From NCBI RefSeq assembly GCF_006345805.1, contig NC_042999.1, positions 52,452,001 through 52,516,000 on the forward strand: DNA of 64,000 nt, in the 5' to 3' direction. The position numbers were made by a program, and so were the translations under genes. This document shows positions 1 through 56,617 of the stretch, piece by piece. Each line of letters begins with the position of its first letter. Position 1 is the first letter of the stretch. The stretch is from Octopus sinensis. Its lineage: Eukaryota. The notes beneath the pieces are model-generated. The model worked only from the letters and a program-made list of their open reading frames with translations, was not told the origin of the DNA and searched no databases.

Positions 1-107
1 TTCACCAGGTGGTGCTATTAAGTTAGACATGGCCTGGGCCAATAATGGCCGAAACCTATCAAAGTATCAAAGTAAGTATATATAAATATATATATATATA
101 CATACAG

Positions 108-165
<58 letters not shown>

Positions 166-446
166 TGTTGTGACTGGGGAGAGTCATTCTCTTTTAGTGC
201 CTTATAATTTAACACACCCACCGGATAACGGACAGAGTCAACAACTATTGCAAAGGTTGCAAGGTTGTGTGAAATTTCACGCACAACATGGACCCACAAT
301 TTCTTCTCAAGAGAATACGTATTTAAATAATTTTTATGAATAGCGAAAGCGGTTGACAAACACAATACAAGATATATTAAAAATTATATTAAAACTATGT
401 AAAGTGTGTGCATTTTCCTTCTTCAGTTTCTCAATTATATGTGTGT

Positions 447-524
<78 letters not shown>

Positions 525-900
525 CATATAGTCACAACATATATACATGTATATATAATCCAGAATTATTTACCTCCCTTACAAATAATCTTTTTTCTCA
601 GCAAGTATTAGACCTGACACCGTATATTAGCCGGTGTTTTTCAAACGATGAATAGCTTTGCGTAACCATGGCTCGTTTTGTTCTCTCTCTTTATTATCAT
701 CTTATAATCATCTCATAATAATGACTTTTATGACTCGTATTACTACCTCAGTCAATCTAAATGTATATATTTGTCACTACCTGTCATAAATAGCCTTTTT
801 GTTTTATTTTGCAATGTGCATTTTCGTTGATTTTTCATATTTTACCCTTATATTTCAACGTGTATTTTGTATTTTATGTTTTCTTTTTATAACATATTTC

Positions 901-999
<99 letters not shown>

Positions 1000-1014
1000 G
1001 AGAGACAGTTAAAA

Positions 1015-1255
1015 GGAAAACAACCAAATTATCCAGTTATATATGGTCCTTAAAAGAAAAGGGTGTCAACAGTAACATCCTTTGTAAGATCTTAGCCAAG
1101 TGTAAGCATTACACTAACGACAGTGGAAAGTGCGGTCTATGTGATATGGAAAGATGGCTCATCTGGAAAAGCAGCTTAGACCTCGCTACATGTCTAAATT
1201 CAAGAATTGAACTTTTTGTGTGATGTCCATACGTGGCTAAATATTTGTTACGGTA
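1015..1255 (+). mobile_element. Penelope-like element, GIY-YIG endonuclease C-terminal fragment
   Basis: Translation KTTKLSSYIWSLKEKG...KILAKCKHY...KCGLCDMER...LNSRIELFV*CP matches the PLE motif LS.YIW.LK...C.LC..EK...LN.R.EL..C.H. Confidence 0.75.
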
Positions 1256-1367
1256 TTGGTCCCCCCAAGATCACAGATAGAACCTGCTTTTTATATTGTG
1301 TCCAAGTACAAGCATTTCATTTCTTACATATATATTTTTATATTTTTACATATATGTATTTTTAGTG

Positions 1368-1677
1368 GAGGCGCAATGGCCCAGTGGTCAGGGCAGCGGA
1401 CTCGCGGTCGTAGGATTGCGGTTTCGATTCCCAGACCGGGCATTGTGAGTGTTTATTGAGCGAAAACACCTAAAGCTCCACGAGGCTCCGGCAGGGGGTG
1501 GTGGCGGTCCCTGTTGTACTCTTTCGCTACAACTTTCTCTCACTCTTTCTTCTGTTGGCCTGCTCGCTTAGCCAATGGGTTGGCGTCATTTGAAGGCTAA
1601 AACAATGCGAAGAGCATTGTGACCAGCGATGTGTAGCAACATCTGATAGCCTGGTCGGTCTCGATGATCACGATGAT
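1368..1677 (+). mobile_element. tRNA-derived SINE, family C (full length)
   Basis: tRNA-like head GGAGGCGCAATGGCCCAGTGGTCAGG...GTTTCGATTCCC; homologous inverted copies at 29376-29666 and 28393-28462. Confidence 0.85.
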
Positions 1678-2586
1678 ATTTTTAGTATATGTTATTGCTT
1701 TATATATTTTTATATATTTTTTCTGTATATTATTTTTCACCCTGCATATTTGTGCATGTGCGTATAGAGAAGTGTATATGAACATAATTGTGCGCGTATG
1801 GGTATATATACGTGGGTGTGTGCGTGTGTACGGGTATGTATATGTGTACATGTTTATGGATGCATATAAATATATGTATACACATAGGTGTGTGTAGGGG
1901 TGCATGTGTGTGTTTCAGGCGAATGTGAGTGAGCATGTTCATATATGCACACGCACGTGCGTGTGTTGGCATGTACATGCGTGCATACTTGGATTCTATG
2001 AGCGTGGGTTTACCTTCTCGGGTAATTTTATTTTCTTCCTATTCGAGTAATCCCCCTTTATTTAACGGTCATTCTCATAGCTCTTTTGTTTGTCTTAATA
2101 ACTGACGAGATGCCGGAGTAGACTTCCAGCCCGACATCCGAAACTCTGAGTTTTATTATGGCAACCGACTAATTTGTCACATGTTATATATATATATATA
2201 TATATATACATATATATTTAAAATCAAAATGAAGGTGAGAAAATTGGATATTAATTTAATAACACCAATTTAACACCAGTGGTCTAGCGCATAAAAGACA
2301 GATTCAGTAAATATTATTGATACACAAATATGAAAGAGAATCCACTATGTGGACGCTCTTACGCTAAAGATAGATTCGCAAGGGTCTCAACCACTAAGAA
2401 TTGTTCTCAAGAAAAATTTAGCGCAGGACAAATGAAAAAATAACAAAAATATAGATTAACCCCATACACTGTTAATAAATTATGCAATTTTACTTACATA
2501 ATTAATCCTCGGATCGTCATATATATATTTATATATATATATATATATATAACATGGAAATTATGTATACTTAGAGTTTATTTACC

Positions 2587-3101
2587 ACTAGCAGTATCGC
2601 CCGGCGTTGCTCGGGTTTGTAAGGGAAATAACTATATAAGCATTTTTAGAGAGTCACTTCCCTTATAGATGCCAATTCGGGCTTTCTTAGCCATTTCTGT
2701 TTTGGTGTCTTCAAGCCATGAAGTCGTTGTTCTAAAAGAACGCTGGTCTCCTTGACAACGCTTTACGACGTTGATTTCCTTACACTCCCTTCCCCACAGC
2801 TTCACGAGGGAGGGAAGAAGGGGGAGAAGCAAACAGGTGCAGGTGTGACCATGGACGCCAACTCCGCCGCCATCGACACACGAAAAATTATGCATTAAAA
2901 TGGAATAAAAAATTATGTTAAATTATTTTTTAAATCGTAGACTCATCGTAGATGCGCGCTAATACTCAGACGGGCTCGATATGAATTACGACTATAAGAT
3001 ACCCGAATTTGGTTAAACTGCACCGCAAAATGTGGGAGTAGTTAGGAATCTAAATCGAAGGGGACAGACACTCACACAACTACAGTTTTATATATATAGA
3101 T
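2587..3101 (+). mobile_element. Non-autonomous Helitron/Helentron-like element (DINE/Lep1-type)
   Basis: Begins ACTAGCAGTATCGCCCGGCGTTGCTCGGG (5' stem-loop) and ends GACAGACA...TTTTATATATATAGAT; ends about 15 nt from the decarboxylase exon-4 donor. Confidence 0.5.
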
Positions 3102-3117
3102 ATGTCACTATACTTAC

Positions 3118-3252
3118 GTCTGGTGATTTATAAGCAATTAGTTTTGAAACAGCCACCCCCTCCTCCATACCGGAATTCCTTCTCTCAATTTTCTGTATTC
3201 CAAGCGTTCTGGCAGTGAAGAGACTTATTAAAATATTTTCAGTGGTTGAACT
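3118..3252 (-). CDS. Decarboxylase coding exon 4 ([15 protein letters not shown]...[10 protein letters not shown])
   Basis: 135 nt; aligns without gaps to GSASEATLVALLAAR...KLVAYSSDQ; AG acceptor, GTAAGT donor. Confidence 0.9.
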
Positions 3253-4645
3253 CTAATAACGAATATTGTACAACACCGGATTAGTTTAGTTAAACATTAA
3301 TTTCTATTAGATATTGTTTCATAATCATAATAGCAAACGTTTTATGCAAATAATTGGTTTGAGACAATGTTATATAAAAAAGATATATATGTATATATAG
3401 GCGCAGGAGTGGCTGTGTGGTAAGTAGCTTGCTAACCAACCACATGGTTCCGGGTTCAGTCCCACTGCGTGGCATCTTGGGCAAGTGTCTTCTGCTATAG
3501 TCCCGGGCCGACCAATGCCTTGTGAGTGGATTTGGTAGACGGAAACTGAAAGAAGCCTGTCGTACATATGTATATATATATAAGTGTGTGTATATATGTT
3601 TGTGTGTTTGTGTGTCTGTGTTTGTCCCCCTAGCATTGCTTGACAACCGATGCTGGTGTGTTTACGTCCCCGTCACTTAGCGGTTCGGCAAAACAGACCG
3701 ATAGAATAAGTACTGGGCTTACAAAGAATAAGTCCCGGGGTCGATTTGCTCGACTAAAGGCGGTGCTCCAGCATGGCCGCAGTCAAATGACTGAAACAAG
3801 TAAAAGAGTAAGAGTTTGTGAATGGCATGGCAGTGACTTACCTGGATTACACCTCCTCCACTTCCTTCAGAGGTTGACAAGAATATTTCTGGCAGTTTTA
3901 TAGCCTTTGCCAACCAGTCTAAAACAATGACTTCTAATTCAGTGGCAGCAGGAGAGGATTTCTGAAATATAACGCAAAAGTTAATCTGTTTGTAACACCT
4001 GCAGAAACACCGTCCTCCGGGTGTTTTTCTACTCATATCTAAATGATATTTACACCTTTCATCTCCAATTTGCGTAATCTTATTATATGTTACATCTAAT
4101 TTCCCTTCGATTCCTTTATTCATCTAATTATTAAAGCATTATTGAGCTATGTTCTCTCTATAAAAACAAGACAATTTTTTGAATTCAAATCAGAAGCAAG
4201 ACAGTTGCAGTATAGTTCCACGTCTATCTATATCGCCTTTTGAAAATCCGACAAATCTGAGAAACCAGTTAAGCGAATCCCAGTACATTTCTATTTCTAT
4301 GCAGGAAATACAAAAGTGAAAGAATATGACTTACCCACGAAATTACCACATTCACCAAAGTATCTGACAACATTTCTGCCAGAATTGCAGCATAAGAGGT
4401 TCGTGCGGGGAAATAAGCACCAAAATTTGGATGTTGCCAGTGACAGACCTGAAGGGTAAGAGTTATTTGAAGAGTTAGGATTTAAGTGATAGTCCATGAA
4501 AGGGAGAAATTTCCTTTTTCTTTTAAAATTATCAGACTAACACAATAAAAACATTTAAAATGTTTGTGTGTTGACTAATTCTATACGTGAAAAATCATAC
4601 AGAAAGAAACAAAATGTTGTGATAGAATGTATGTCAGTTTTTATT

Positions 4646-4704
<59 letters not shown>

Positions 4705-6401
4705 GTGTGTGTGTCTGTGTGTCTATTCTTGTGTAGGAAATATATGTTTTTCTGTGGGGCGGACAGGGAACTAGAAAGAAAAACACAACCAAAAACTTTC
4801 CTTTTTAAATACATGTAAATCTGAACGGGAAATAAACTCGTAATTTCTTTGAAATGATCCCCTCTCTGTATATGCTAATCTTCAACAATTGTAGCTATGC
4901 TTTCTGTTTTCTTTCTCCAGCTTGAAGATAAATTTCTATCAATATATTTCTGATATACATTCTGAGTTCAAATTCCGCCGAGGTCGAGTTTGCCATTCAT
5001 TCTTTCGGGGTCGATTAAATAAGTACCAGTTACGCACTGGGGTCGTTGTAATCGACTTAATCCCTTTGTCTGTCCTTGTTTGTCCCCTCTACAAAGTCTT
5101 CAATACTAACACATTATAATAAACACGATGTTATGCCAAATAGGAAAGCAACCATATGTATAATACAAACGGAAAATTCTTAAAACCAGAACCCTCCCCT
5201 CAGAACATTAAAGGTGGAATCCTTCGGCAAGATACTTTACACTTCTAAATATCAATCTGTTGGCATTACATTATGAAAGGGACAGCCAATGAGTACGTGT
5301 GTCTGTGGGCAATAAAGAAATAAATATATTTCTGTTGTGAAGCGCAACAGATCAGCTGTTTAGTTAAATAATCAACAATTACACTAAAGATGATTACGCG
5401 TTAGGACTGGAAATTGCAATGAGATTGTCTCGAAATAATTGCCCATCAGTCTTCAGGTGTATGTTCGGTAAACATCCTTGAAATAAATATCTCTTAACCC
5501 TGGGAGAAAACTGCTCCCGGATAATTCACATCTCAACTCCAACGACAAATCTAACTCGCGATGATTATCCCCTGATAATCATTATTCAATTATAATTTAT
5601 ACTCATTATTAACGCAATTATTATTTATTATAAAGCCAACAATTTACAATGTTTGTCGTACTTTGAAAGGAATGTGACATTAGAAATCTTATTAAAGGAA
5701 TCATTCGCCTTTTGAACAGCAGAAAGAAACATGACCATGGGAATTGTACGGATGCAGTTGCTCCACAGCCCAAACATTTCCAGTGTTTTATATTATTGAA
5801 GGCTCATGGCTAAGCGGTTAAGATATTCGGCTCAATATTTTAAGATCGTGAGACATGTGGCGGTGTGTTGTGTCCTTGGGCAAGACACTTTATTTCATGT
5901 TGCTCCGGTTCACTCTGTTGGCAAAAGGGAGAAGCATCTGGATTTCAAAGAGTCAATCTTGTTAAACTTTGTCTCATGCTGAATCTCCCTGAGAACTACG
6001 TTAAGGGTACAAGTGTTTTGTGGATCGGATCAACTAGAACACTTGTCCTTGTAACCTATGGAGCGCCAGTGTTTATATATGAGATAACGTAAGAGTTGAA
6101 TTAAACTCCAGCAGCATCTTAAAAGAAATAAAATATTATCAAAATGTCATACGACCTTATTCCTCAATGAAATCTATTTTGATTATCGAAAACTTACGCC
6201 TGGCATAATTATTCTTTCGATATCTTGAAAAACATCTTCCCATTTATCTGGATTTTGTGGGGCTTTTTCTGGTATCAACTTTCTCAGGAACCCGGGAACA
6301 ACAGAAGATAAAACTTTTCTAGTTCGAATATTACCAAAATAACCATTTATATATTTAGTCAACTGTGCAACGGCTTTCACGAAATTTTCAGAGCCTTCCA
6401 T
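3118..6401 (-). CDS. Aromatic L-amino acid decarboxylase-like (group II PLP decarboxylase, DDC/HDC/TDC family), 5' partial gene, exons 1-4, 191 aa
   Basis: Exons 6198-6401 (204 nt), 4335-4448 (114), 3842-3961 (120), 3118-3252 (135); all phase 0, GT-AG. Sizes match my recollection of the first coding exons of human DDC (201/114/120/135). Motifs: [14 protein letters not shown]...[14 protein letters not shown]|[35 protein letters not shown]. The next exon (AHSS, His192) was not found in 1-3117. Confidence 0.95.
3400..3815 (+). mobile_element. tRNA-derived SINE, family A (with internal TA/TG microsatellite)
   Basis: Head GGCGCAGGAGTGGCTGTGTGGTAAG...GGTTCAGTCCC, tail AAGTAAAAGAGTAA; about 9 copies in the window; fills most of decarboxylase intron 3. 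Confidence 0.9.
3842..3961 (-). CDS. Decarboxylase coding exon 3 ([40 protein letters not shown])
   Basis: Within ORF 3719-4123; TTTCAG acceptor, GTAAGT donor. Confidence 0.95.
4335..4448 (-). CDS. Decarboxylase coding exon 2 ([38 protein letters not shown])
   Basis: CTTCAG acceptor, GTAAGT donor; HW.HP.F.AYFP motif; frame not shown in the ORF track. Confidence 0.95.
4960..5303 (+). mobile_element. SINE-B 3' half fused to an R4/Dong LINE fragment
   Basis: Reverse-complement match to 15990-16330, including the SINE/LINE junction. Confidence 0.75.
5805..6065 (+). mobile_element. Degenerate SINE, family D
   Basis: GTGTCCTTGGGCAAGACACTTTATTTCATGTTGCTCC shared with 60955-61275 and, inverted, with 54217-54545. 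Confidence 0.65.
6198..6401 (-). CDS. Decarboxylase coding exon 1 (MEGSENF...IERIIMPG)
   Basis: Within ORF 6183-6401; donor GTAAGT directly after MPG, as in DDC. Confidence 0.95.
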
Positions 6402-7099
6402 GTTTCTATATTATTACGATGATGATGATGATTTATTAGATGAGAGCTAATATAGAACACCTTCTGGGAATATTTGCTATGCAATTGCGCAACAATTTTG
6501 GCTTTTTTAGTTACGTAATAGTTGCATATTGTTTAATTACGTAATAATTGTGTTGTTAATTGCGTAATATTTACATTATTAAATAATTAGATAAGACTTG
6601 ATGAATTTATTTGTTTAAAAATTCCTGTTTATTCTGTTGAGTTTAAATATTTAATACCCAACGAGATGCGACATAAAGGGTTGAACTTAAATGAAAACAA
6701 TTCAACCTGGCCCCCACTCCCTTCTCCAATCTACTTTCCAACAAACTTACATAAGAGTACCACCTCTCCATTCATCGTACTTCCCACCTCACGTGGTACT
6801 TGAAGAAGTTGATAAAAGATAGTCTGCCATTTGCCCTTCCATCTTTCCCACATACAATCTTCCTCGAGGTAACCCCCGTTTTTTGATGGAGTTACGTCTA
6901 GGATGACTCATCGTTTCTGAAAAACGTTCCTTTCTGATACTATGCTTCTTGGTGAATATTCCTTCCTTGTAGGCTGTCCTTGGTGGACTGTCATTCCTGA
7001 TGGGCTCTTCTGCCTGGTGGACTGTCTTTCTTGGCGGACTCTCCATGCTGGGGCGGGGGGGGGGTATGCTCTCCTTTCTGGTGGGCTTTCCTTGATGGT

Positions 7100-7640
7100 G
7101 GGCTCTCCTTGCCGGTGAACTGTGCTTCCGGCTTGACTATCCCTCCTGCTGGACGAAACTTACTGCATGCTACAATATCTGTTCTACATAACTTCATAAT
7201 CGAGCACTCGCGTGACTCTGAGCGAACACATAACGGACGGTTTCGCCGCAGTGAGGGCACCTCGAGCAGACGTGACTTATCGCAACTCTATGCTTGTAAA
7301 CTGCATCTCAAATGAGTAATGTCTTCCAGTATCACCGTCAGAAATTTCTGGGAGTTTCCTATAGTCCTCGCACTGAAAGTAACCCCAAACAAACATTTCT
7401 GTTGATCTCTGTCTCTGTACAATATCACGACGGGCACTTGCCTAAGAGTTAGTGTTTACAGAATGCCATACCACCAATAACATAATCCAGCCAATACAGA
7501 ACTGTAAATGCCTGACAATATTCCAAAGTTTTGACGACCCACTATAGCATTCGCTTGACCCCAAACTGAAGTCTCACCATAGAATCAACCGATGAGCACA
7601 CTTGTTCCCTGTCTATGAATTGTGTCAAATATAGCTAGAT
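7100..7640 (-). mobile_element. L1/Tx1-like LINE 3' fragment (zinc-knuckle region), degenerate
   Basis: Minus-strand translation AVYKHRVAISHVCSRCPHCGETVRYVFAQ...LxSYVEQIL resembles the zf-RVT region of Tx1 ORF2; contains stops. Confidence 0.5.
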
Positions 7641-8133
7641 CAGTACATAACTGCCAATCTTTACTCGTGGTAAACCGAACGTTTCTTTTAATGTTTGTTG
7701 TTAGAAATTTGATATGCAGACAAGTGAAACGCATTCCTTCGCTATAAAACCAAATGAAAATAAGGAAAAGGGTGACTGTCAGAGTTGATTAAATTACTGA
7801 GGTGATAAATATATCCTTTCTGGATCTTTTACGAATAGCTTCTTAGCACATTCATTTCGCGTTGTGATGCCTTCAACGCTTTTAGCGTCCACAAACGCTC
7901 AAGGTATAAAATGCAGAGGAGTGATTGGAAAAGGCACTCTTTGCAGACCGAACATGTGACTCGAAACAGTTTTGTTAGATGGCCATCTCGTCTGAGCATC
8001 GTGAAAACCTACTGAATATTGAAACACTCCAACTCTTAGAGACAACAGAAATCGAATTACGTTATAAGTCACTGTAAAATACTAATGGTCGACTTATGAA
8101 GTACGTACAAATATACATACATTCGCAAAAAAA

Positions 8134-8575
8134 ACATGCATACATACATACATTCAAACATACATACATACATACATACATACATACATACATACATACA
8201 TACATACATACATACAAACATACATACATACATACATACATACATACATACATACATACATAAACATACAAAACATACATACAAACATACATGCATATAC
8301 ACACACACAGACACGCATACATACATACATACATACATACATACATACATACATACATACATACATACAAACATACATACATACATACACACACGCACAG
8401 ACACGCATACATACATACATACATACATACATACATACAAACATACATACATACATACACATATACATACCTAACATACATACATACACACATACATACA
8501 TACATACATACACACACACACATACATACATACATACATATATACATACATACATACATACATACATACAAATAA
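8134..8575. repeat. (CATA)n/(TATG)n microsatellite array, imperfect
   Basis: Seen directly; source of the MYVC/HTYI ORFs. Confidence 0.97.
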
Positions 8576-9793
8576 GCAAACAATTCAACCGGAGCCAGGC
8601 AGCAGTAGGCAGAAACACGAGAGGAGAAGCAGTAAATATCATAGAAGCTCCTTCAAAAGAAACTGACGCGGATTCTCCATATTCAGTCTGTGGAAATTTG
8701 CAAGACATTCCAAAGATTATCCATCTGAGATTCTTTTGGTGAATAGATACGCACACTTAGGTGTATACATCGACAATTGAACTTAACACACCAACTCAAC
8801 CTGTGACGGTCACTTGTTCGCTTCTCTTCAAAACTTCAACCGAATTGTTGAATAGCTCATTGCACTTTCTATGTCCAAAGTATGTTAAGTTTGTGGACAA
8901 CGGCTATTTTGGGGCTTTCACGTTTTCAAGTATCGCAGCATTTCTTAGCCTGTTCTTCTTGCTTATTCTCCTTAATATGCGAAAGATCTACATGTCAGAA
9001 ACATTTTTCTTCTTTTCCATTGCTGTGTACTTGCCCCAGTTTTGCTCCGTGGAGGGCAGTTGGTGGTATATAAAATTTTACTGGTTTTAGTTTTTGGTGC
9101 AAAGTTCTGTATTTTGAGGTGAAGAATTTCGTCATTCTTGCCTTTGATTAAATAGCTATGTTGAAATTATGGCTTAACTTATTCGAAGGGAGAGAACCAA
9201 CTTAGAACGCTATCACGTAAGTTATTTCCCTTGCGTAAATATTTCAGTTTTTATTATACCAGAAAAGTAAAACTCAAAGTTAACTTGATCTCTGTAAAAT
9301 AATAAAACAGTTGCATAACTTTCATGGATATTCACCAGATTGGTCTAAGCTATGATCGGTATCGATAGCAATATTTCTGCTAAGTGAATTCGGGATTCTG
9401 GCGAATTCTCAGGTGTATGTGCATTGGACAGGAATGCAAATTGGAGATAGTTCAACTTGAAGTAGGGAGCAGAGATTTGCAAACAAATTCGTTTTCTGCA
9501 CCGATGACAGCGGAGCAAGATGTGCCTGAGTGTGAGACGACGGAGAGAGCCTAAGTGTTTAGGAGACGGAAATAGGTTGAGTTTAATTAGAAAACGAAGA
9601 ATTGTTTTTGTAGATTGTCTTAAATGTAAACTTGTTATTCCGACAAATATTATGACAAAAATGACTTGGAAAGAAGTCTACGAATGACATGTCTTAATTT
9701 TTTTGCCTGTTCTTCTAATTGTTGTTTATCTTGTCTGCCTTGTATCATTTATCTGTCCGAATGTTTTATTGTACTCTATTGTGTTTATGTTCC

Positions 9794-9847
<54 letters not shown>

Positions 9848-10038
9848 TATTGTGTCTGGGGAGAGTCATTTTATTTTTGTGCCTTATTATGTAACACACT
9901 CACCGGCAAAATTACCACTTTTCTTTTTCATATTTTAATTCTCCTAAAATTTTCGTTGCGTCTTGCAAACTTTTCAATAGTTTTGACTCTGTCCGTTATT
10001 TACACTGCGTTTCCTTTTGTTTGTGCGCATGTTGTGCG

Positions 10039-10104
<66 letters not shown>

Positions 10105-10259
10105 CTGTAAATTAATATGTTACCATATTCAATAGCCAAGATAAAACTCTGAGTTTTATTTTGGCTATTGAATAATGGTAACATTAATTTACAGATAAAT
10201 TTCCTCTATTTACATAATATTGAGGTCTCTTTCTTTCTTTTGTTATCTTACCGTTTTTA

Positions 10260-10323
<64 letters not shown>

Positions 10324-11383
10324 CATGTACAACATGGTCTAACTTTATTTAATGATGTCCAAAGGGAAGCAGATTATCAGAACAGAACCATTAAACGAGC
10401 CCTGAAAAAATATCCCTCGGAGATATCGAAGAACTGAGGCCAGAAATGTTTTCTAGTTTAATCCGACATTCCCAATGAATGCTGAAATTTCTATGACTCG
10501 GAAAATTTTTAACTCGAAGCACATTCACAGCAGAAAATAAAGCAGACGACAATATCAATCATTTTTTAAATGCAGTAAACTAACAGATGAAAAAAAAAAG
10601 TATAAGTGTAGGCATGACTATGTAAGAAAAATACGGCATTGAGATGTTATCTGAGTAGTGTGTGACTTCGAAATATCTGGTAAGTGGTATGGACATGAAC
10701 CAGAAGCTGTGTCAAAGAATGACAATTACTCAGTCATATTATTCAGCTCTAAAGCTGTTGAAATGTAATTGCGTCTCTTCATTTCCTTCGTCTGAAATTT
10801 GTTGTCCTGTTTCATAATTTACTCCATGTGCTGCAGCTGGGTTTCTGTCTTCCATACTGATCTTGATGACATTTACTTACTTCAGGATAGAACACTAGTG
10901 TTGTTTTATGAATCGCGGGGTTATGAACACTTGTATATCGTCCGGTGTTATTTTAGACATTTTGTGACAATATCCTCAAGATATTGACGCTGAATACCTG
11001 CCAATATTTTACCGTATAAAGACTGACTAATACATTTGACGGCAATCTCTTTGAACCAAATATTCTGGAACTACCTTTAAAGCAGGAAACTGTCAGAGTT
11101 AATTCAATTATCTGTTTTCAAGGTAACATATATTATGTCATACGAGCTCCCTCTCCGAGCGTAACATTCCGTATTTGCAGGAGCTGAACAAAATTTTTCT
11201 TTGAGTTGAACAAATAAGCCTTATAACTTTGACAAAGTGCCTTCCAGAATGTTTAGTTTTGGTTCATGTTTGAAATAATATCCAAATAGAAAATGAATTT
11301 CTTCAGTTGAAGCTGGAACACTAACAATTCGCCGAGGAAGTTTTTAAATATATCAGGGTGTCAATAGCAAACAACAAAAACAA

Positions 11384-11393
11384 CAGCGGCGGC

Positions 11394-11427
<34 letters not shown>

Positions 11428-11447
11428 GCAGCAGCAGCAGCAGCAGC

Positions 11448-11481
<34 letters not shown>

Positions 11482-11515
11482 GCAACAACAACAACAGCAA
11501 CAACAGTAATAACAA
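11384..11515. repeat. Compound (CAA)n/(CAG)n trinucleotide repeat
   Basis: Seen directly. Confidence 0.97.
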
Positions 11516-11635
11516 CTTTTATTTACCACAAGGTTCAATAAAATACAGAAAGCGTGTTACAAAAGAGTTACAAATTGGGAATCTGTGCGTATACATATAT
11601 CATACCTTTTGTATGTGTTCGAGATTTTATACACA

Positions 11636-11890
<255 letters not shown>

Positions 11891-12968
11891 TGAATTCTGC
11901 GTTGTGATAACGTTGTATATTAACAGAAGTCAAAACTTTGTTGCTGGAAATAAATACAACCAGAGATCACCTACTCACAGAGAGGTGAGAGGCTTCCTTT
12001 TTATTATCTTAACGCAATATAATCCGATCTTCAGACACTCCAACTTTTCCCTCCTTTTTGTTTCATCTTGTTTAGTCTTTTTATAAATATTAGATACTAG
12101 TTCAGACTGCCGTGAGGCCCAGGTTTCCAGAGCATGGCCATCTCTTCAAGAGGGTTTTGAAACCTCATGCATTTATTTTCTCAGGTCTCATACTTTTTCG
12201 CCTCATTATTCTGAATGCTGTCGACTACTTCTCTCCAGCCTCCCCCAGCCTCATCTTTTCCTGATTGTCATAATACCATATGTCGGCTCCACTGTATGTA
12301 GCATTTCAGAGTTTCTATGCTTCGGGTGTCCGAAGGATGATCCTAGATTTCTTGTCCATTCCAAACATCTGGTGCTCGTTTCGCAGACAATGTAATGATT
12401 TTTTTGTTTCAACTTCGGTTATCATCGATAATAGCCAATAATTCATAATACTTTACCTTTCAATTACACTTCAGTGATAGACAAATGAATGAACAAAGCA
12501 GAAAGATTGATATTTATCCGTGGAGCTAGGAGTAAAGATTGAAATATTTACATTAATTCCGCTCTGTTCACCTTTAACAATAATACATTCTTGGAAGAAG
12601 GATCAGGAATTCTGTACATTTCATTGTCACTTTACGTTTATTATTTTGCGAATCTCATATAACAGGTTTTATATATGAAACAACAATAATAATTATGGAA
12701 TGTTAAATATATTTACGTTTCACATAAACAAGATTCAAAACAAAGAATGATTTCAGCAAATAAGTCTCATTAAGACTACAATGTCGCCATCAGCTGACTC
12801 TTTGAAGAATGTATAATGGTCTTAATATGAACGACTTTATCAACAATACTTTGTTTTGGAATAAAGCAAATTAACTAATTTGATGAGTGTCATTCTCATC
12901 TTCGTTCCCATACTTGGTTTATAAATACATCATTGGATTTTCTGGAGATTATATTATATTTATAAAAG

Positions 12969-56536
<43,568 letters not shown>

Positions 56537-56617
56537 CTGATGATAAAAAATGTAAACGAATACGTAATTAAGACAGGCAAACAATCACAAGAAAAATTAA
56601 CATAATTATAGATTTAG

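Follow-up and report, generated by a model that had tools for sequence, protein, structure and literature searches.

We analysed a 64,000-nucleotide stretch of Octopus sinensis DNA (the window; RefSeq assembly GCF_006345805.1, contig NC_042999.1, positions 52,452,001 to 52,516,000 of the forward strand), which holds exons 1-4 of a 12-exon gene of the AADC family (aromatic-L-amino-acid decarboxylases), here called paralog A. All four exons lie on the minus strand. Coding exon 1 (6401..6198) starts with an ATG at 6401 and encodes 68 codons (MEGSENF...IIMPG); exon 2 (4448..4335) encodes residues 68-105 in the numbering of DOPA decarboxylase (DDC), including Trp71, Tyr79-Phe80, Ala82-Arg83 and loop 2; exon 3 occupies 3961..3842; and exon 4 (3252..3118; SSTTENIL...AYKSPD) is the gene's last exon in the window. 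The splice sites are canonical, with AG acceptors on exons 2-4 and a GTAAGT donor after each of the four exons. The exons splice in frame into 191 residues of an AADC-family protein, and the equivalents of Trp71, Tyr79-Phe80, SPAATELE and GGGVIQ are intact, so that translation and splice check bear out the original prediction of an intact exon structure and framework. This fragment matches the Pfam profile PF00282 (Pyridoxal_deC) with 142 bits against a cut-off of 27 (E = 2.7e-41, profile positions 1-152 of 375). In RefSeq, the O. sinensis protein P0271 ('aromatic-L-amino-acid decarboxylase-like isoform X2 [Octopus sinensis]') starts with exactly these 191 residues, the product of exon 1 matching its N-terminus at 100% identity. 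An exhaustive HMMER search found the Octopus bimaculoides protein P0121 (A0A0L8H4P3) at 88% identity, and a longer query recovered the remaining octopus relatives; short-query protein searches returned unrelated proteins only, of at most ~335 residues and at most 58% identity, and so carry little weight as regards transcript fragments or other cephalopods. No further AADC exon was found in positions 1..3117 by tblastn with human DDC and 120 homologues.

The remainder of the gene was followed in locus sequences from O. sinensis (L001, to which window positions 1-16401 are 100% identical), Octopus vulgaris (L002) and O. bimaculoides (L003). Paralog A spans 47 kb in O. sinensis, and its exon 5 lies ~8.9 kb past the window's start. 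On one strand of the O. sinensis chromosome the order is an OATP/SLCO transporter gene, paralog A, a second divergent gene, paralog C (P0272), and, ~45 kb past the end of C, the canonical DDC (P0276), on the same chromosome and strand as A. The OATP-A-C order is also present in O. vulgaris. In O. bimaculoides, A and C are followed by a third copy, paralog B (P0391; L003 43096-49590, minus strand), on the opposite strand; O. sinensis showed no B copy in the 10 kb past C, nor one in its protein annotation. Paralogs A, B and C and the canonical DDC all have 12 exons of nearly identical lengths. O. vulgaris A (P0270, 485 residues) and O. bimaculoides A (P0389, 481 residues) are intact 12-exon GT-AG genes, and O. 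bimaculoides B and C and O. sinensis C likewise have intact reading frames and a full, intact set of 11 GT-AG introns. Paralog B is a mosaic, A-like in exon 2 (87% versus 63% identity) and C-like in exons 4-9 (85-100%), which suggests that the tandem copies have exchanged sequence by gene conversion or recombination. The in-frame exon 2, 114 nt long, encodes Trp71, Tyr79-Phe80 and the whole loop-2 segment of the pocket. Annotation includes isoforms that skip it, of A in O. vulgaris (P0270) and of B in O. bimaculoides (P0392, P0279), and their products would be without half of the pocket.

Paralog A shares 53% amino-acid identity with canonical cephalopod DDC, and the differences reach into the substrate pocket. 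Against the structures of pig DDC (1JS3) and 9DUI, exons 1-8 align with no gap, octopus residue n corresponding to DDC residue n-1. Loop 2, which reads GCIGFSW in DDC (Gly99 to Trp105) and ACIGFSW in P0276, reads VNVVISW in paralog A (codons 4355..4335, minus strand). The Thr82-Ala83 positions are Ala-Arg (codons 4406..4401, minus strand), and the loop that holds the phosphate of pyridoxal phosphate (PLP), GSASE in DDC, is SSTTE (codons 3252..3238, minus strand). The original prediction had read all three segments exactly. In DDC, Ile101' and Phe103' touch the catechol ring, Ile101' stabilises the substrate, and Thr82 hydrogen-bonds a catechol hydroxyl (PMC8003434, PMC12443470), while Phe103', Leu353', Tyr79, Phe80 and Thr246 form a hydrophobic wall (PMC3285636); Ile101, Phe103 and Thr82 line the active site (PMC8003434, PMC3285636), as the original prediction had stated. 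The primed residues are supplied by loop 2 and loop 3 to the neighbouring subunit: Ile101' and Phe103' enter its pocket (PMC8003434, PMC3285636, PMC12443470), and loop 2 (101-103) together with loop 3 (345-356) completes its active site (PMC12078590, PMC3285636). Loop 3 is held by Arg347 via Asp345 and His348, and Leu353 supports the PLP phosphate (PMC12443470, PMC8003434). Of the pocket residues, paralog A has Ala for Thr82, Val for Ile101', Val for Gly102', Ile for Phe103', Val for Thr246 and Cys for Leu353'. Loop 2 of paralog C (P0272, P0393) is LATDVISW, in which Asp takes the place of Ile101, and is accompanied by Phe79-Phe80; two different versions of a rebuilt pocket therefore lie in one cluster.

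We gauged how unusual these residues are against 192 other AADC-family proteins of 400-1000 residues, from which they deviate by far more than chance would allow. Gly102 and Phe103 proved nearly invariant, as predicted, being present in 177 and 183 of the 192; Val at 102 occurs in none and Ile at 103 in one, and all A/B/C proteins have Val-Ile. Arg at position 83 and Cys at position 353, each found in all A/B/C proteins, occur in none of the 192, nor does the Ser or Pro that A/B/C have at position 356. Pro at 308, shared by all A/B/C proteins, is found in three of the 192, and Thr or Ile at 309, as in A/B/C, in four. At positions 347 and 348, where 145 of the 192 have Arg and 145 have His, A/B/C have Thr or Met and Ser, Lys or Thr, respectively. 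Ala82 is ordinary (55 of 192), and SSTTE is only mildly unusual: Ser146 and Ser147 are common, and Thr148 (4/192) and Thr149 (5/192) are rare but conservative. The set Arg83, Val102, Ile103 and Cys353, with Asp101 in C, was found in no other AADC sampled, and the VNVVI motif is absent from the ordinary molluscan DDC, TDC and HDC proteins; its presence in molluscan DDC or TDC was something that the original prediction had counted against itself. Across the 86 columns conserved in at least 90% of the family, the paralogs are changed at 9-14 (A at 12-14), compared with 0-2 in cephalopod DDCs and a family median of 2. T69C, G102V, F103I, A148S/T, S149T, D310S/G and D345N are shared changes of the clade's stem. 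On this stem, residues that give the aromatic pocket its shape and shut the active site were replaced: Thr82, Ala83, Gly102, Phe103, Asp345, Arg347, His348, Leu353, Arg356 and the run Asn308-Phe309-Asp310.

The catalytic framework has been retained alongside these changes. Every A/B/C protein has Trp71, Phe80, Pro81, Trp105, His192, His302, Lys303, Tyr332, Gly354 and Arg355, and 11 of 15 pocket and catalytic positions are invariant among five A/B/C proteins, where the figure over all columns is 52% (P = 0.08). Further along the window's gene in O. sinensis, exon 5 (L001 22158) carries SHCSVEK, with His192, and exon 9 (L001 35508) carries SPLYLQ, with Tyr332. Lys303, in the motif N-P-H-K-W, falls outside the window; O. 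vulgaris A has it, as do the A, B and C copies of O. bimaculoides. Among solved structures, DDCs come closest (E = 1e-140 to 1e-142). An AlphaFold2 model of P0271 has a predicted local distance difference test score of 88.9 and a predicted template-modelling (TM) score of 0.89, and its best match in the PDB is human AADC (8ORA; TM-scores 0.94/0.97, root-mean-square deviation 1.2 Å). The modelled chain is a monomer of a chimera of A and C (see below), to which the window's gene contributes residues 1-263 and the window itself 1-191. Confidence in the model is high overall and lowest at residues 101-110 and 321-360; these blocks correspond to the two rebuilt loops, which are also intrinsically mobile in DDC.

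A neighbour-joining tree (Kimura distances, 477 columns, 200 bootstraps) places A/B/C well within molluscan DDC and apart from TDC and HDC. The three paralogs form a clade with 100% bootstrap support that joins cephalopod DDC, again with 100% support; the cephalopod DDC clade in this tree consists of Octopus, Argonauta and one RNA-seq sequence (P0278, runs SRR276660xx). The stem of A+B+C measures 0.28 substitutions per site, compared with 0.02 on the DDC side. A, B and C are products of duplication of a cephalopod DDC. Rates of synonymous substitution (dS) give a rough order of events, being 0.67 for A versus C, 0.11-0.15 for O. vulgaris or O. sinensis versus their O. bimaculoides orthologues, and saturated for A versus DDC. 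We considered whether A might be one of the known family members and rejected each in turn: it is not the canonical DDC, since P0276 is separate, A/B/C have their own 100% clade and the pocket and the Asp345-Arg347-His348 triad are replaced; it is not an HDC, as all paralogs have Gly354 and fall outside the group that the HDC-like and TDC sequences form with 98% support; and it is not a TDC, from which the tree places A/B/C apart. At position 354, the Gly of DDC is replaced by Ser in HDC. The prediction of a rebuilt-pocket paralog distinct from the canonical DDC is thus upheld by the separate P0276 and by the long-stem, Octopus-only clade. Its description as a cephalopod enzyme was right about the paralog and too wide in scope: among full-length matches the divergent clade had no member outside Octopus and was confined to three Octopus species. 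No divergent copy was found within 10 kb on either side of the Argonauta DDC locus, a result that is uninformative given the distance of over 45 kb between DDC and the divergent copies in octopus.

Selection on the paralogs was estimated by the Nei-Gojobori method as the ratio of nonsynonymous (dN) to synonymous substitution rates, with bootstrap 95% confidence intervals (CI). For A, O. vulgaris versus O. bimaculoides, dN/dS is 0.57 (CI 0.40-0.82) at 84% amino-acid identity; for C, O. sinensis versus O. bimaculoides, it is 0.62 (CI 0.42-0.99) at 87% identity; and for A versus C it is 0.36-0.40. The control, canonical DDC of O. sinensis versus Argonauta, gives a dN of 0.094 and a dS of ~2.2 or more, hence a dN/dS of ~0.04 at saturated dS, and the canonical DDCs of O. 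sinensis and O. bimaculoides are ~96% identical. Because 0.57-0.62 stands against ~0.04, the paralogs are under purifying selection that is weak, with roughly ten times less constraint than DDC. Between O. sinensis and O. vulgaris, the exons of A differ by 2.2 substitutions per kb versus 8.9 per kb across the locus, they contain one small indel, the frameshift of the last exon, where ~6 would be expected, and all splice sites are conserved. Exon divergence, conserved splice sites and the invariance of the pocket together point to some constraint.

Exons 1-7 and 9-11 of A are intact in O. sinensis and nearly identical to those of O. vulgaris. Exon 8, which encodes YADSFSMNPHKWLHMPTSCSIIW, including Lys303, is absent from the O. 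sinensis assembly: 1,420 bp of the O. vulgaris sequence (L002 31,199-32,618) are cleanly gone at L001 31,101, beside a (TC)n tract and with no run of N. As exon 8 is 68 nt long, its loss shifts the frame and brings an immediate stop. The 600 bp upstream of the junction contain 38 gap-opens, compared with 0-4 per 500 bp elsewhere, a density typical of an unpolished long-read patch, and we judge the deletion to be probably an assembly artefact. In the last exon, at L001 ~56995, one extra T (TT to TTT) causes a +1 frameshift, so that O. sinensis reads CTTCCTTTCGA where O. vulgaris reads CTTCCTTCGA. The surrounding region is otherwise clean, and the extra T may be either a genuine mutation or an error in the homopolymer. 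As assembled, O. sinensis A cannot give a full protein. The RefSeq model P0271 is a chimera of A exons 1-6 and C exons 7-12 because of the missing exon 8 and the last-exon frameshift; in practical terms, the RefSeq model of this O. sinensis gene is an A/C chimera, apparently forced by an assembly defect. In a second type of annotated isoform, exons 1-11 of A continue into the 5' end of C. Such joined isoforms (models P0271 in O. sinensis and P0269 in O. bimaculoides; L001 64067-64207) suggest either read-through or chimeric transcripts, or models forced by assembly defects. The original prediction had proposed recovering the downstream exons, and the outcome was divided: His192, Lys303 and Tyr332 are present in the orthologues, and the O. 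sinensis assembly is without the Lys303 exon and has a frameshifted last exon. Taken literally, the missing lysine exon is an observation that the prediction had counted against itself, yet the deletion looks like an assembly error.

From alignment, tree and model taken together, paralog A is a tandem DDC duplicate of the Octopus lineage with the AADC fold, whose pocket and closure network were replaced collectively. We give an even chance to the reading that A is a PLP-dependent decarboxylase no longer tuned to L-DOPA or 5-hydroxytryptophan (5-HTP) and directed at a different substrate. On this reading A would have stayed a PLP-dependent amino-acid decarboxylase. L-DOPA and 5-HTP would no longer be its preferred substrates because Phe103, Leu353 and Arg347, a network required for productive closure on L-DOPA, have become Ile, Cys and Thr, the hydroxyl-binding Thr82 has been lost and Arg83 lies adjacent (with Asp101 in C), and A would then act on another amino acid, possibly at low efficiency. 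A wider proposal, that A/B/C are octopus-private, DDC-derived decarboxylases making a non-canonical amine (a neuromodulator, a salivary or venom amine, or a precursor of pigment or ink), or that they retune DDC as trans-acting heterodimer partners, we regard as speculative and on balance unlikely.

Several observations weigh against retained decarboxylase function and bring forward the main rival, in which A is a decaying duplicate or pseudo-enzyme that lost DOPA decarboxylase activity and drifted under weak constraint, so that it folds without catalysis or serves a non-catalytic role; O. sinensis A could then be a pseudogene by now, or its expression could be limited to a chimeric A-C read-through. 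A dN/dS of 0.57-0.62 is high for an enzyme, with an upper confidence limit for C that nearly reaches one, and cross-species identity is lower in A and C than in DDC. The Asp345-Arg347-His348 triad, on which catalysis by human AADC depends, is Asn-Thr-Ser in A and Asn, Met/Thr and Thr/Lys in B and C, so that together with Leu353 and Arg356 five loop-3 residues are all replaced; single changes at Arg347 or Leu353 inactivate human AADC, R347Q and L353P abolishing its activity, and G102S is a pathogenic loss-of-function variant (PMC12443470, PMC8003434). PLP-contacting residues are also changed, Thr246Val and Ala273Ser in A of all three species and Asp271Glu in A of O. vulgaris and O. sinensis (exon 7, WLHVEASYAG). 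The last of these is real, because exon 7 is identical in the two assemblies. Asp271, which pairs with the PLP pyridine nitrogen, is kept in O. bimaculoides A, B and C and is Asp in 178 and Glu in one of the 192 family members; Glu271 still supplies a carboxylate. To these may be added the O. sinensis copy without exon 8 and with an extra T in a clean stretch of its last exon, the RefSeq chimera and the annotated exon-2-skipping isoforms. No transcript-derived A/B/C fragment was found in the protein collection, weak evidence given that the candidate lists were length-limited and missed even an identical RefSeq protein. Against decay stand frames and introns that are intact in orthologues and paralogs despite the old A-C divergence, a dN/dS for A significantly below 1, the invariance of His192, Lys303, His302, Tyr332, Gly354 and Arg355 in every copy, and derived pocket residues conserved across paralogs. 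Exon divergence between O. sinensis and O. vulgaris is, moreover, four times below that of introns, and the exon-8 deletion adjoins the gap-rich patch described above. We hold the pseudo-enzyme possible but doubtful. The original prediction had offered a neofunctionalised enzyme or a pseudo-enzyme; the derived pocket is confirmed, and, given the dN/dS of A, Glu271 and the lost triad, A may be either of the two.

Other functions are much less probable. If A/B/C were trans-acting subunits that heterodimerise with DDC or with one another and thereby retune or inhibit the partner's pocket, one would understand why most stem changes (Val102, Ile103, Asn345, Thr/Met347, Cys353, Ser/Pro356) fall in loops donated in trans, and why the genes lie adjacent to DDC with read-through or chimeric transcripts annotated; the proposal is purely inferential, same-subunit residues Thr82, Ala83 and Thr246 have changed too, and we consider it improbable. 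An aldehyde-synthase-type enzyme, coupling decarboxylation to oxidative deamination in the manner of insect DHPAA synthase (DHPAAS, amd) and plant aromatic acetaldehyde synthases (AAS), seems slightly less probable still. Like amd, A descends from DDC by tandem duplication and has an altered active site, and Phe103Ile with Leu353Cys could loosen the region that moves in DHPAAS, where Phe103 shifts from PLP, the Leu353 loop moves and an O2 tunnel opens (PMC12078590). The known switches are absent, though: A keeps His192, which is Asn in insect DHPAAS, and Tyr332, which is Phe in plant AAS, and its residues 79-80 are Tyr-Phe, as in DDC, where mosquito DHPAAS has Phe-Tyr. The aldehyde-synthase chemistry raised by the original prediction thus finds no support. 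That A is a plain octopus DOPA decarboxylase with lineage-typical drift, as its 'aromatic-L-amino-acid decarboxylase-like' annotation and its best structural matches might suggest, has next to no probability, since a distinct DDC with a consensus pocket lies nearby (P0276) and has O. bimaculoides and Argonauta counterparts, the two groups split in the tree at 100% support and the pocket residues differ.

Comparison with characterised enzymes places the retuned-decarboxylase reading in context. The canonical cephalopod DDCs (P0276; O. bimaculoides P0282; Argonauta hians P0275) have the 12-exon structure, fold, His192, Lys303 and Tyr332 in common with A. They differ in having ACIGFSW, Thr82, NFDCS, DYRHW and IPLGRRF where A has VNVVISW, Ala82-Arg83, PTSCS, NYTSW and IPCGRSF; P0276 also carries NPHKWLQVNFDCS. 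Human and pig AADC/DDC (8ORA, 1JS3, 3RBF) are 43-45% identical to A and share the PLP framework and the catalytic-loop Tyr, whereas their ligand contacts Thr82, Ile101', Phe103', Thr246 and Leu353' are all substituted in A and the loop-3 triad is replaced. Insect DHPAA synthase/amd (6JRL), which likewise arose from Ddc by tandem duplication and has an altered active site within the old fold, is the closest precedent, a neofunctionalisation of this very gene. The amd gene sits in the Ddc gene cluster. Its switch consists of His192Asn and the Tyr79/Phe80 swap, with Gly102-Phe103 and Leu353 kept (PMC12078590); the octopus genes, in contrast, keep His192 and have changed Gly102, Phe103 and Leu353. 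The octopus and insect duplications are independent events. The plant enzymes of the same family, AAS and TyDC/TDC (6EEI, 6EEM, 6EEW, 6EEQ; 36-39% identity in the fold search), illustrate how few active-site residues can switch specificity and chemistry, and they keep Gly-Phe at 102-103 (NVVGFNW, SIVGFSW; P0122). In plant AAS a Phe replaces the catalytic-loop Tyr that A keeps. The leech Helobdella has tandem TDC-clade paralogs, a lophotrochozoan lineage-specific AADC expansion whose division of labour was left unassigned (PMC7992859). The leech genes belong to the TDC subclade, and no rebuilding of the pocket was reported for them; the tree in that study contained O. bimaculoides sequences without comment on them (PMC7992859).

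We found no paper in the literature that describes or tests A, B or C, which were previously known only by automatic 'AADC-like' names in RefSeq and UniProt and from one uncommented tree. DDC is normally a single, highly constrained gene, and a tandem trio with jointly rebuilt, trans-donated loops constitutes a natural experiment in the evolution of AADC specificity, by a route distinct from that of insect Ddc to amd. Octopus tissues are historically rich in unusual amines, and octopamine was first found there. Should the proteins be active, they would point to an amine pathway that is as yet uncharacterised, in an animal of importance to neurobiology; should they be inactive, they would offer a clean case of a duplicated enzyme retained as an open reading frame under weak constraint.

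The remaining features of the window concern its other gene and its repeats. The OATP/SLCO organic-anion transporter gene, directly upstream of paralog A on the same strand, occupies 12969-56584 (minus strand), with its first and last large exons at 55682-56584 and 12969-13466, both of which match Pfam PF03137. A 163-residue open reading frame in an intron of this gene (48151-48642, minus strand) resembles by eye a fragment of a retrotransposon reverse transcriptase, with no Pfam match at E <= 0.001. Long (ACAT)n, (AT)n and (AAC)n microsatellites at 8134-8570, 11370-11888, 54606-55820 and 39510-40183 produce spurious open reading frames of 100-300 residues in all frames. Rfam and tRNA scans of the window gave no matches. 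Intron 3 of paralog A contains a noncoding interspersed repeat of ~440 bp (3371..3814, strand not assigned), which ARAGORN did not call a tRNA. The window has further copies, 85-89% identical (16894-17347, 31564-31951), and others lie in introns of A and C; in the old O. bimaculoides model P0121 the repeat had been wrongly translated as an exon.

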